The position numbers and the translations under genes are program-made. DNA of 64,000 nt from Hemiscyllium ocellatum (lineage: Eukaryota), in the NCBI RefSeq assembly GCF_020745735.1, contig NC_083433.1:6521363-6585362 (forward strand), written 5' to 3'. Positions 416-63,950 of this stretch are shown here, one piece after another (within the stretch, counting starts at the first letter, position 1; each line of letters begins with the position of its first letter). The notes beneath the pieces were generated by a model. The model had not been told where the DNA came from, searched no databases, and worked only from the letters and a program-made list of their open reading frames with translations.

Positions 416-2678
416 ATGAGGGTCCATGTGATCAGAGGAGAGTTTGTGCAGATCCAGCAGACTCTGGTTCACATCCTTCTCCATCTGCAGAGCTCTCTGC
501 ATTGCCTCCAGACCATTGCCCCACTCATCCTGCTCTGGCTTCTGGGAGGAGAGAGAAAGGAGAAGGGCTTCACATTCTACAGTCGCATTTGAGACACTGG
601 GTTTAGAGAGAACTGTGGTGTCAGTTACTGTAATAAACCACAGACACTGCTATGAAGCAGCTTAATGCTCAGAATTAGTCCATCTACAATAAACATCAAA
701 CCCAACCTTGACATCCTGCAGGAGGACTCGGCCTCCACGTTTATTCTGGAATTCCATCAGTTTCTCAGCGTGTTCCTGTTCCTCATGGGACTGCTCCTTG
801 AAGAACTCAGCAAAGTGATGCAGGGCAACATCATCCCGGTCAAAGTAAGAGGACTGGGGGAAGGAGAGAAAAATCAAGTGTCATCTAAAGCTCCAAAAGC
901 AATTCAAGATCTTCAATTGAAATAGTTTTCAAGTAGTCAGTCAATGTAACAGCCCTCTCGTTCTGGACTCCCTGACCCCAGGGAACAGACTTTGCCTGTT
1001 TATCCTATCCATGCCACTCAATTTTGTAAACCTCTAAGGTCACCCCTCAGCCTCTGACAATCCAGGGAAAACAGCCCCAGCCTGCTCAGCCTCACCTATA
1101 GCTCAAATCCTCCAACCCTGGCAACATCCTTGTAAATCTTTTCTGAACCCTTTCAAGTTTCACAACATCTTTCCAATAGGAAGGAGACCAGAATTGCACA
1201 CAATATTCCAACAGTGGCTTAACCAGTGTCCTGTACAGCCACAGGATGACCTCCCAACTCCTGTACTCAATACTCTGACCAATAAATGAAAGCATACCAA
1301 ATGCTTTCTTCACTATCCTAGTGGCCTGCGACTCCACTTCCAAGGAGCTATGAACATGCACTCCAAGGTCTGTTCAGCAACACTCCCCAGGACCTTACCA
1401 TTAAGTGTACAAGTCCTGCTAAGATTGGTTTTTCTAAAATGCAGCACCTCACATTTATCCGAATTAAACTCCATCTCACTTCACAGCCCATTTTGGTCCA
1501 GATCTTGTTGTAATCTGAGGCAACCCTCTTCACTTTCCACTACATCTCCAATTTTGGAGTCACCTGCAAACTTACAAACCATGCCTCCTTATGTTCACAT
1601 CCAAAGTCGTTTAGAAGTGAAAATGAGTGGACCCAGCACAGATTCTGGTGGCACTCCACTGGTCACAGGCCTCCAGTTTGAAAAATGACCCTTCACCACC
1701 ACACTCTTGGACCTTTGAGCCATTTCTGTATCCAAATGGTCAGTTCTCCCTGTACTCCATGAAATCTAAGCTAGATTCAGCTCATTATTTCAGCTGAAAT
1801 TCATTGAAGCTAAAGGATTAGGTTTCATGCCGAGAATTTAGGGTCAACTTGTGTCAGAGTCTGTAGTACATCCAGCTTTCAATGGATTAAACCAAAGTGC
1901 CCTACGTTCCTTAGTAGAGGAGATTTTTCATAACAGGATAGATCTCTCCACAGTCTCTCAATGATGGGTGAGATAGTCTGACATGGTAGGGTTTACTGCC
2001 AGATACTCTTGCAAACATTTCCATGACTGTATGGAATCAGGGAAACAAGAGGGGAGGTACTTCAAATTGATTCCAGAACAAGCAGTGAGATACTCTCAAA
2101 TACCATGGAGCAAGTTAATTATACACATTTTCTATTCCACTAATGAAAACAGTGATTATGGCTGTGAATGAAGTCTCAACATCAGAAGGTTGAGAGCATA
2201 ACATTCAAAAGGGAGGGAACAATACGAAGGAGGATCTGCCAGACTACAGCAGTGACTCTAGAGAGTGTGACCTTCTGGCAATAGGTAAGTCCATGGTTTG
2301 ATACAAAAACCCAAGTATAATTCAGATACACCTCTGGAGTAGATAGTACTTGAACCTAGGCCTCTTGGTTCAAAGGCAGGGACACTACCACTGTACCACA
2401 AAAAGCCCACATTACACCTTAAATAACCATAGAGAGCAGTTGCTGTAGGAGTTGTTCACTCAAAAGGTTATTCCATGTTCAAAATCACTAGAACATTGCA
2501 CAATCCATTTTACCAATACATTAAATCAACAAACATCTAACTCTTCAGGTTGAAGTGTCAAGTCCACAAGCCTCACCATAGAGAGGTAAACATAGGAGGA
2601 ATAGAGCTCCAGGTTGATCTGCTTGTTAACAGCATCCTCACAGTCCTTGTGGTAGTTCTGACATACTTGTGAAGCCAT
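416..2678 (-). CDS. Ferritin heavy/middle-type subunit, copy F1 (3' partial; exon 4 lies outside the window)
   Basis: Exon 1 2678-2577 ([34 protein letters not shown]), exon 2 853-707 ([49 protein letters not shown]), exon 3 541-416 ([42 protein letters not shown]); GT-AG junctions. Confidence 0.92.
955..1770 (-). mobile_element. CR1-like LINE ORF2 (RT C-terminal) fragment in F1 intron 1
   Basis: ORF 1092-1361 reads [44 protein letters not shown], a CR1 signature; degenerate [13 protein letters not shown] motif upstream. Confidence 0.88.
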
Positions 2679-2905
2679 CTTCACTATTCCTACTCACTAT
2701 CACTAAAACTAAATTTATTTACCCCACGAGTTGTTGTATTTATCCTACTGGGACACCCTGCACTCAACCAGGGCGTGGCAGCACCAATCAAGATTGACAA
2801 TCCCTGACAGCCGCTCAGGAATTTCCAATCAATCCAGGCACCAATGAACACAACAGGGAGGACTGTGAGGGAGGAGCTGAGACCCAGAGCCAATCAGAGG
2901 TCTGG
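2679..2905 (-). promoter_or_regulatory. F1 proximal promoter and 5' leader
   Basis: GATAAA at 2744-2739, several CCAAT motifs and a CACCC motif; block conserved upstream of most copies. Confidence 0.6.
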
Positions 2906-3149
2906 AAGCTAGACAGGTTTGAGAGATGAAATTTAATGATATCATTGCTCTTGGAGTAATAGATTCTGTGCACACCCCAAATGAGCTGGATGTGATTGAA
3001 TGACAGATGAAGTCTCTTGTCCTTGGAAACACGATATTAACCTTCTCTTCACCTTTACCAAATATATGAATGTGTCCCAGAATTTTACCTGACAAATTAA
3101 ATGCAAAGGTTTTATTTTTGCTAGCTTCAAAATGGACCAAATTTCAAAT

Positions 3150-3870
3150 GTTCATTCATTAATGGGAAATGGGCATCGCGAGCTTGTCCAACATTTATTG
3201 CCTGTCCCTGGTTGCCCTTCTGAAGGTGATGATGAACTGCCTTCTTGAAACAAAACAGTCAATTGACTTAGCTACACCCACAGGACTGTTAGGGAGGGGG
3301 ATCCAGGATTTTGACCCAGTGACACTGAAGTAACACCAATGTATTTCCAAGTCAGGATGGTGAGTGACTTGGAGGGACCTTCCTTGTCCTTATAGATGGT
3401 ATCGGTCGTGTATTTGGAAGGTGCAGACTCAGGTCCCGGAGAGAATTACTCTCGTACATCTCGTGGATAGTACACACAGCTGCCACTGAGTGTCAGTGGA
3501 AGGGGGAGTGAATATTTGTGAATGTGGTGCCAATCAAGTGGGCTGCTTTGTCCTGGATGGTGTTGAGCTTCTTGTATGTTGTTGGAGATGTACTCATTCA
3601 GGTAAGTAGGGAGTATTCCATCTCACTCCTGAGTTGTGTTTTGAAGATGGGAGACAGGCTGTTGGGAGTCAGAGATTGTTTACTTGCTGCAGGATCCCTA
3701 GTCTCACTGAATTTATCTGACCAGTCCCGTTCATATTCTGGTCAATGGTAATCCCAGGATATTGATAGTGGGGGATTCAGTCATGATAATGTTATTGAAT
3801 GTCATGGGGTAATGGTTAGATTCTCCTTTGGTGGAGGTGGCCGTTGCCTGGTACTTACCATATATGGACA
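3150..3870 (-). mobile_element. Old CR1/L2-group LINE 3' fragment
   Basis: Minus-strand tail resembles aagggcaa..agggatgggcaataaatgctgg; decayed ORF2-like sequence; paralogous copy at ~50440-51225. Confidence 0.55.
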
Positions 3871-62599: not shown

Positions 62600-62935
62600 T
62601 AGGGCACAATGGCTCAGTAGTTAGCACTGCCAGCACCTTGGTTTGATTGCAGCCTCAGGTGACTGTCTGTGTGACATTTGCACATTCTCCCCGTGTCTGC
62701 GTGGGTGTCCTTTGGTGCTCCTGTTTCCTCCCACTATCCAAAGATGTGCAGGTGAGGTGAATTGGCCATGCTAAATTGCCCATCATGTTCAGGGATGTGC
62801 TAGGTGCATTAGTTAGGGGTAACTGTAGAGTAGTCCAGGAATGGATCTGGGTGGATTACTCTTGGGAGGGTCAATGTGAACTTGTCAGGCCAAATGGCCT
62901 GTTTCCATACTGTAGGGATTCTGTGATGATTCTAT
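62600..62935 (+). mobile_element. HE1-like V-SINE
   Basis: Same family as 9461-9810. Confidence 0.85.
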
Positions 62936-63609
62936 GGAAGTTGATCAATAAGAATTTATGCTTCTTACCACTTGGATGTTTTAATCCATGTCCACAGGTA
63001 GGTATTGATTGGAAGCAGTTCCTGTGGGAAGGATCAATCAATAATTGCCCTCAGAGCCAGTACAACCATAGGCTTTCATCAAAGCCTGTGGGGACCATTG
63101 AGTGACCACATGATGTCTGTCAGTTTGGTCAAAGCCCATTGTGACCATTGGACGTTCACTGCATCTTGAATTCTTGTTTCATCTAGAACGGGTATCAAGA
63201 TCTGAATGCATTTTCTGTTCATGTGGATTGACTGTGTCTGCTGGTGGTATTTCTCCCTGGAAGCTCCTGCCTGTCATGTAACTAACAGTTCCAGATGGGA
63301 ATCACTGTTGCTCTGTCTGGTGCACCTCAAGCAAAAGTTAATCCAAGGGAGCACATCTCATCACTTCATCCAAGAATAAACCCTTCTCAAATGAAGCCAG
63401 AAGTCAACATAGGAGATCTCAGTAACACAGCCACTTGAAGCAAAAGGATCAGAAAAATCACTTGAAAAAGCACTTCAAAAGTAATTTTTTAAAAATCATT
63501 CCATTTTTATCTAGCTGTAAACAACCAGCTCGTTGGAAGTTTGTTGAGAACTTATTAATCTGAAAGCAGTGACCTCATCAAGAATAATATCCCAAATATT
63601 GACATTTCA

Positions 63610-63848
63610 AACCTCTGATTGGCTCTGGGTTTTGGCCCTGCCCACCCCCCCCCAATCTCCATCCCCTTTGTTCATTGGTGCCTGGATTGATGAGAGATTG
63701 TTTGGCTATTAAGATTTGTCAATCATCATTGGTGATGTCACCACTGGTTGAGTGCAGGGTGTCCCAGGAGGATAAATGCAATAGCAAGGGGGGGGGAAGA
63801 GGCTCAGTTCTAGAGTTGTCTGGGTGATAGTGAGCAGGAGTAGTGAAG
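63610..63848 (+). promoter_or_regulatory. F11 proximal promoter and 5' leader
   Basis: ctgattggc, CTTTGTT, ATTGG motifs, GGGTG, GATAAA at 63771-63776. Confidence 0.6.
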
Positions 63849-63950
63849 ATGGCCTCCCAAGTGTGTCAGAATTACCACAAGGACTGTGAGGCTGCTGTTA
63901 ACAAGCAGATCAACCTGGAGCTCTATTCCTCCTATGTTTACCTCTCCATG
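63849..63950 (+). CDS. Ferritin copy F11, exon 1 (remainder outside the window)
   Basis: [34 protein letters not shown] followed by a gtgagg donor. Confidence 0.9.

Follow-up and report, generated by a model that had tools for sequence, protein, structure and literature searches.

A divergent array of intron-bearing H-type ferritin genes without iron-responsive elements in the epaulette shark Hemiscyllium ocellatum

Ferritin serves as the classic case of translation under the control of iron, with one or two genes for each type of subunit. The stretch under study (hereafter the window) comprises 64,000 nucleotides of Hemiscyllium ocellatum contig NC_083433.1 (positions 6,521,363 to 6,585,362 of the forward strand), has a G+C content of 43% and no runs of N, and a motif scan of its six-frame translation revealed abundant ferritin exon pieces. 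In the current study we conclude that the window is a segment of a much larger germline ferritin cluster that is amplified across elasmobranchs. That this real cluster segment would provide a bulk supply of H-type ferritin free of the iron-responsive element (IRE), with the ovary or oocyte as the likeliest site of use, is the reading that we favour on balance.

Ferritin loci were counted by per-exon tblastn against the whole window, employing the four exons of a 176-amino acid (aa) protein built from the locus designated G10, and the splice junctions of the gene models were inspected by eye, one by one. This approach returned exactly 11 loci, with six on the minus strand (G1–G6) followed by five on the plus strand (G7–G11), i.e. 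in a divergent (head-to-head) layout. The initial annotation of this DNA, made from the letters, had proposed the same number of loci, the same strand order and an array running off both edges, and the limits it had set at 416 and 63950 coincide with the outermost exon ends of G1 and G11.

Six loci are complete and intact, with open frames of 175 or 176 aa, in agreement with the number given previously: G2 (6550..8302, minus strand, 176 aa; exons 8201-8302, 7249-7395, 6950-7075 and 6553-6705 plus stop), G3 (14249..16254, minus, 175 aa), G4 (22046..24253, minus, 175 aa), G5 (29598..31574, minus, 176 aa), G6 (34132..38900, minus, 175 aa) and the reference copy G10 (58232..60115, plus, 176 aa). 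Two alternative C-terminal endings occur among these proteins. Every complete copy displays the four-exon, three-intron structure of vertebrate ferritin genes, with exons of 102, 147, 126 and 150 or 153 nt and introns that are all in phase 0 and bounded by GT-AG, and two of the junctions were confirmed by spliced contigs; the notion of an amplified family of intron-containing genes was thus borne out by the gene models. Across the copies the introns measure between 135 and 2284 nt, those of G6 being long (1386, 1568 and 1287 nt). At the edges, G1 (416..2678, minus) is represented by exons 1–3 (2577-2678, 707-853 and 416-541), the visible part being intact and exon 4 lying beyond the left edge, while G11 (63849..63950, plus) is represented by exon 1 with its upstream promoter, the remainder lying past the right edge. 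The proteins of G2, G6 and G10 occur exactly in RefSeq for Hemiscyllium ocellatum, for example as 'ferritin heavy chain A-like', on a chromosome of 50.07 Mb; the initial annotation had placed the sequence in a cartilaginous fish, as its source confirms.

Concerning the nature of the encoded proteins, three window proteins matched the Pfam Ferritin family (PF00210) with 135–140 bits against a cut-off of 24.5 (E of approximately 1e-39 to 1e-41), and the best-scoring solved structures were those of bullfrog M ferritin (PDB 1MFR and relatives; E of approximately 1e-85), followed by the human H chain. Alignment to frog M ferritin is gapless over residues 1–175 at 73% identity, and alignment to human H is likewise gapless; since the N-terminus aligns from residue 1, the array proteins carry no signal peptide or leader. 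The seven H-type ligands E23, Y30, E57, E58, H61, E103 and Q137 (frog numbering, equivalent to human E27, Y34, E61, E62, H65, E107 and Q141) are present in every intact copy, in keeping with the earlier claim that H-chain ligands are retained. They are also present in G8, and the visible parts of G1 and G11 keep theirs. All intact copies also retain D127 and E130 of the three-fold channel. On these grounds the intact copies encode subunits of cytosolic type with a complete H-type ferroxidase centre, predicted to be catalytically competent, and the 73% gapless identity to frog M ferritin suggests that they would form ordinary 24-mer cages oxidising Fe(II).

The initial annotation had further likened these proteins to M-type chains. 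This affinity holds for E53 in the FFKEQ motif (frog-M position 53), which is common to the array and frog M ferritin, but not for the M-specific residues H54 and D140, which are Q and M in all array copies. In the protein tree the array forms a chondrichthyan clade of its own, and the frog sequence falls in an unresolved basal fork. Given the presence of E53 and the replacement of H54 and D140, 'H-type with one M-like residue' is a more accurate description than 'M-type'.

The proximal promoter and exon 1 together form a block of approximately 330 bp that is 78–86% identical across the 11 loci, well above the identity of the introns; in G10 the shared promoter and short 5' untranslated region (5'UTR) occupy 57997..58231 on the plus strand, as deduced from self-comparison and motif counts, with no IRE. 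The sequence ATAAAT (TATAAA in G6) is positioned 63–77 nt upstream of the ATG, CCAAT/ATTGG boxes number one to five per copy per 250 nt versus 0.8 expected, and many copies also contain a CTGATTGG core. The promoter of G6 is more diverged and retains its TATA box and CCAAT boxes. From the position of the TATA box a leader of approximately 30–45 nt can be deduced, and a 693-nt spliced contig, described below, starts 26 nt upstream of the ATG of the copy to which it aligned.

No match to the Rfam models IRE_I or IRE_II was found on either strand of the 64 kb, whether the gathering threshold or E ≤ 10 was applied as cut-off, and no CAGTG occurs in the approximately 75 nt between TATA box and ATG. 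As a control, three cDNA-like contigs encoding the canonical shark FTH1 (P0109), which is 71% identical to the array proteins, gave IRE_I scores of 42–42.6 bits, the threshold being 34. Shark IREs are thus within reach of the method, and the array genes lack them. By sequence, the array 5'UTRs are both too short to accommodate an IRE and devoid of one. Neither of the two Rfam cut-offs brought up any further RNA family in the window that was credible. A match to the mir-750 precursor model lies in intron 1 of G3 (15793-15867, minus strand; 40 bits against a gathering threshold of 60, E = 1e-5), a hairpin that may be due to chance or derived from a repeat. Three European Nucleotide Archive (ENA) metagenome scaffolds (L001–L003, 896–955 nt), intronless and cDNA-like, encode a protein identical to the canonical FTH1 that is annotated in Chiloscyllium plagiosum, and carry its IRE; the environmental samples behind them evidently contain transcripts of sharks or other fish, or a very conserved FTH1.

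Evidence of transcription was obtained from assembled contigs. Run X1 (organism A) yielded the 693-nt contig, of high word depth, in which 58333 is joined to 59060, and 59202 to 59367. These junctions are the modelled exon 1–2 and exon 2–3 junctions, and its exon 4 best matches that of G9. A 272-nt spliced contig from run X6, which bears the organism label of the runs holding the window DNA, contains both of the same junctions. Spliced transcripts of the family were furthermore found in numerous small RNA-like runs, which came from several organisms and several studies. Close members of this family are consequently transcribed and spliced as modelled. Since the X1 and X6 contigs differ from G10 by 3–6% (95–97% matches), they derive from another paralog or a related species.

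Of the nine loci whose integrity can be assessed, three are not intact, namely G7, G8 and G9, all of them among the five on the plus strand. G7 (42142..42449, plus), identified by tblastn and self-comparison, is a relic of promoter and exon 1 in which the first 29 codons of exon 1 remain, the ATG is replaced by GTG, a stop occupies codon 4 and the donor site is lost; neither tblastn nor a follow-up search revealed credible candidates for exons 2–4 downstream. G8 (46200..47762, plus) possesses four exons and an open 175-aa frame, within which exon 2 carries a clean, in-frame inversion of 24 bp (46981..47004, plus). Once reverse-complemented, the inverted segment agrees with G10 in 23 of 24 bases; the inversion rewrites eight conserved residues where helix B ends. 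NCBI models G8 as a protein (P0022), with a 1563-bp span and a neighbour that agree with the window. In the pseudogene G9 (51707..54953, plus) the damage is limited to exon 2, where the acceptor is shifted, 3 bp are deleted and a TGA interrupts the frame; its other exons are intact.

The intact coding sequences nevertheless evolve under constraint. Among the six intact genes the mean rate of nonsynonymous substitution (dN) is 0.023 and that of synonymous substitution (dS) 0.074, giving a dN/dS of 0.31, and the variable sites comprise 20 nonsynonymous versus 19 synonymous changes where neutrality would expect approximately 77% to be nonsynonymous (p = 3.6e-4). Purifying selection on the array coding sequence is evident, although a dN/dS of 0.31 is relaxed relative to that usual for canonical ferritin H. 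By every sequence criterion the array is mostly functional. Exons are 94–98% identical between copies, and 96–98% for every pair where exon and intron identity were compared, whereas most short introns are 65–75% identical where they can be aligned and are otherwise unalignable, and even clearly recent duplicate blocks are only 87–93% identical in their non-coding DNA. The silent sites of the exons are thus far more alike than adjacent neutral DNA, which points to short-tract gene conversion whose extent is limited by the diverged introns, or to constraint on silent sites.

Self-comparison revealed how the array was built. An inverted segmental duplicate at 5..6711 (minus strand) pairs with 47604-54522 at 87–91% identity, in such a manner that exon 4 of G2, the spacer and G1 correspond to exon 4 of G8, the spacer and G9. 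A direct duplicate at 44727..46770 (plus strand) pairs with 57177-58808 at 88–93% identity and spans the 5' parts of G8 and G10, from the sequence upstream of the gene through exon 1 into the first part of intron 1. In addition, the segment of G2 from exon 2 to exon 3, intron 2 included, matches G10 at 90.6%, and intron 3 of G1 resembles that of G10 and not that of G9. The copies are accordingly mosaics generated by repeated direct and inverted segmental duplication. A simple palindrome as the origin of the six-minus, five-plus layout was discarded, since G1 and the 3' end of G2 pair with G9 and the 3' end of G8 and the inverted pairing is not in mirror order.

The copies were also sought in independent data. 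Low-coverage DNA runs with the same organism label, from a separate study, contain 58–69% of the sampled words, and their contigs cover 30 of 30 bins of a 6-kb stretch of the window; for the 3' exon and 3'UTR of G2, the share of words in four DNA runs was 0.59–0.69. In DNA run X11, exon bins have approximately 10–60 times the summed word depth of unique spacer bins, a figure that is not a copy number but fits the presence of many near-identical exons elsewhere in the genome.

Relatives of the array are widespread among sharks and rays. Clustering at 90% identity placed the three window proteins found in RefSeq in a group of 127 members from four orectolobiform species (Hemiscyllium, two Chiloscyllium and Stegostoma), and a wider protein search returned extensive sets of paralogs in Rhincodon, lamniforms, Mustelus, Scyliorhinus, Heterodontus, Pristiophorus, Heptranchias, a sawfish and skates. 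A quick maximum-likelihood protein tree (176 columns) resolved three shark groups, namely canonical FTH1, a second amplified group labelled 'middle subunit-like', and the clade of the window array. The latter is confined to chondrichthyans, with rays among its members and a Callorhinchus protein as its sister (93 in the Shimodaira–Hasegawa-like approximate likelihood ratio test, SH-aLRT), while frog and Latimeria sequences fall in an unresolved basal fork. The orectolobiform part of the tree is a polytomy: window proteins are up to 98% identical to Chiloscyllium proteins, as against 94–97% among themselves, a topology holding all Hemiscyllium copies together is not rejected by the approximately unbiased (AU) test (p = 0.34), and the tree does not date the copies relative to the split between Hemiscyllium and Chiloscyllium.

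The novelty implied by the initial annotation must be withdrawn, since the genes are annotated in RefSeq and the expansion has already been reported for sharks (Sahm et al. 2024, bioRxiv 10.1101/2024.09.09.611499). In that preprint the Greenland shark is credited with 155 FTL-labelled and 179 FTH1-labelled copies, approximately 80% of which reside in three clusters syntenic with the white shark; the expansion is described as ancient and the largest cluster as ovary-specific in its expression. A search of the literature on shark and elasmobranch ferritin returned nothing beyond this one paragraph, and the text makes no mention of iron, IREs, oocytes, yolk, promoters, pseudogenes or mode of duplication (Sahm et al. 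2024), whereas IRE state, promoters, pseudogenes and duplication mode were worked out here for the window array. The Greenland and white shark clusters resemble the array in their many full-length, clustered copies and in the same-clade proteins found in lamniforms and other sharks; they differ in species and order, the epaulette shark being a member of the Orectolobiformes.

Comparison with better-known ferritins delimits the array further. Canonical vertebrate FTH1, including the shark's own (P0109), shares with it four exons, approximately 71–73% protein identity, the ferroxidase ligands and the three-fold channel residues; FTH1 is, however, a single gene with an IRE-bearing leader, its coding sequence beginning at nt 121–147 in the control contigs, whereas the array is multi-copy, has a 5'UTR of approximately 30–45 nt without an IRE and forms a separate clade. 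Bullfrog M ferritin has the same length, a gapless alignment and the FFKE motif with E53, but differs at the positions of its H54 and D140, and in the tree it lies in an unresolved basal fork outside the array clade; frog ferritin mRNAs carry IREs. An analogy, and no more than that, may be drawn with the mammalian FTMT and FTHL17 family, which are IRE-less, H-like ferritins of restricted (often germline) expression, FTHL17 being locally multiplied. Members of that family are intronless retrocopies, some without ferroxidase activity, whereas in the shark array genes the three introns and the full set of catalytic residues are retained.

What, then, might such an array be for? Its subunits, produced in quantity by many transcription units, would assemble into ordinary iron-oxidising 24-mer cages, the synthesis of which, lacking an IRE, would escape translational control by iron and the iron regulatory proteins (IRPs), and with the IRE lost it would be transcription and the number of genes that govern the output. 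Most probably the array would supply bulk ferritin to the ovary or oocyte, so that the mother can stock large, yolky eggs in which a very large cell depends on a single nucleus; this use is suggested because the equivalent Greenland shark cluster is reported to be ovary-specific. The initial annotation had proposed a specialised, dosage-amplified iron store; amplification was upheld, and oocyte use, one of the examples it offered, remains plausible and fits the Greenland shark remark, the missing IRE and the Y-box/CCAAT promoter. A stronger form of this proposal would see the array as a germline dosage device for giant oocytes, by a logic analogous to that of the 5S rRNA genes of oocyte type in Xenopus. 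H genes numbering from dozens to hundreds, without IREs and driven by Y-box/CCAAT promoters, their exons kept alike by short-tract gene conversion, would then allow one oocyte nucleus to load a centimetre-scale egg with ferritin independently of iron sensing. We consider this stronger form possible but put it forward tentatively.

Several points weigh against the supply of IRE-free ferritin to the ovary as the explanation of the array. The basis for the ovary is one sentence of a preprint, on another species. The spliced contigs are not provably from any gene of the window, and as evidence of transcription they come with neither a tissue label nor an expression level; for the specific 3' end of G2, the share of words in RNA-like runs was at most 0.24 and confined to the conserved exon part, which is not proof of silence. 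Start sites were read from contigs, and the absence of the IRE was established by a covariance model and inspection by eye. Finally, with three of 11 loci damaged, not all copies contribute.

The foremost alternative is a somatic role, in which an IRE-less ferritin would serve as a standing buffer, either for iron withholding (in immunity or red cells) or as an antioxidant during hypoxia and reoxygenation. The epaulette shark is known for cycles of hypoxia and reoxygenation, the subunits are of the ordinary H type and catalytically complete, a buffer of this kind would be well served by freedom from IRP control, and the occurrence of transcripts in many RNA-like runs may mean expression beyond one rare tissue. 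The runs in question carry no tissue label, however, the sole published statement on tissue names the ovary, and amplification of the family in sharks and rays of very different ecology is a poor match for an account specific to hypoxia. A somatic role is regarded as rather unlikely.

Less probable again is that the array reflects largely neutral birth and death through unequal crossing-over, with one or a few working copies and the others drifting towards pseudogenes. Damage to three of the nine judgeable loci (G7, G8 and G9), the mosaic of direct and inverted blocks as a mark of ongoing rearrangement, and a dN/dS that is relaxed by the general standard of ferritin H would all be expected under such a regime. 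Yet six copies keep their frames, splice sites, catalytic residues and promoter despite introns that have diverged beyond alignment, the deficit of nonsynonymous changes is significant, and the amplified state has been kept across elasmobranch orders. That the assembly itself produced the multiplicity, by setting down haplotypes or collapsed and expanded repeats as tandem copies, was a concern raised at the outset, and some identical proteins do carry two RefSeq accessions (through duplicated assembly or true identical paralogs), but we regard it as extremely improbable, as intron lengths differ up to 17-fold, introns are unalignable, 3'UTRs and spacers are distinct, independent DNA runs of the same label contain the majority of the words sampled and cover the spacers with tiled contigs, and the same expansion is seen in several independently assembled shark genomes, so that these copies are not duplicates made in assembly.

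Pfam analysis of the longest open reading frames (ORFs) of the spacers identified only a decayed ZCCHC3-like sequence (43200-44100, plus strand), situated between G7 and G8 where gene orientation switches. One of its ORFs corresponds to the second RNA-binding domain (E = 2e-27) and the next to the CCHC zinc knuckles, with an in-frame stop between the two and the upstream domain in another frame; at 50% its G+C content is the maximum of the window. Short interspersed repeats at 56700-56899, 57500-57699 and 59700-59899 have a huge summed word depth in every run, whether DNA or RNA-like, and a loose-end consensus such as GGAATCGAACC suggests that they are tRNA-derived short interspersed nuclear elements (SINEs), one of which lies in intron 3 of G10. 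An inverted pair of approximately 500 bp and 85% identity (11274-11770 versus 26637-27119), located in two spacers and unrelated to ferritin, is probably a transposable element.

Sharks depart from both rules of ferritin biology, in that very many intact, intron-bearing H genes are maintained and the IRE has been dropped from them, while an IRE-bearing FTH1 persists elsewhere. As the expansion is already public, the value of the present analysis lies in mechanism and not in discovery: the window represents a fully resolved sample in which intact genes, a shared promoter, the modes of copy death (a truncated relic, a micro-inversion and a nonsense mutation) and array growth through direct and inverted block duplication with mosaic exchange can be seen together. 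Should the link to the ovary prove true, this laboratory-friendly, egg-laying species would offer a tractable model of how vertebrate eggs are provisioned with iron, and also of gene amplification as a dosage strategy.

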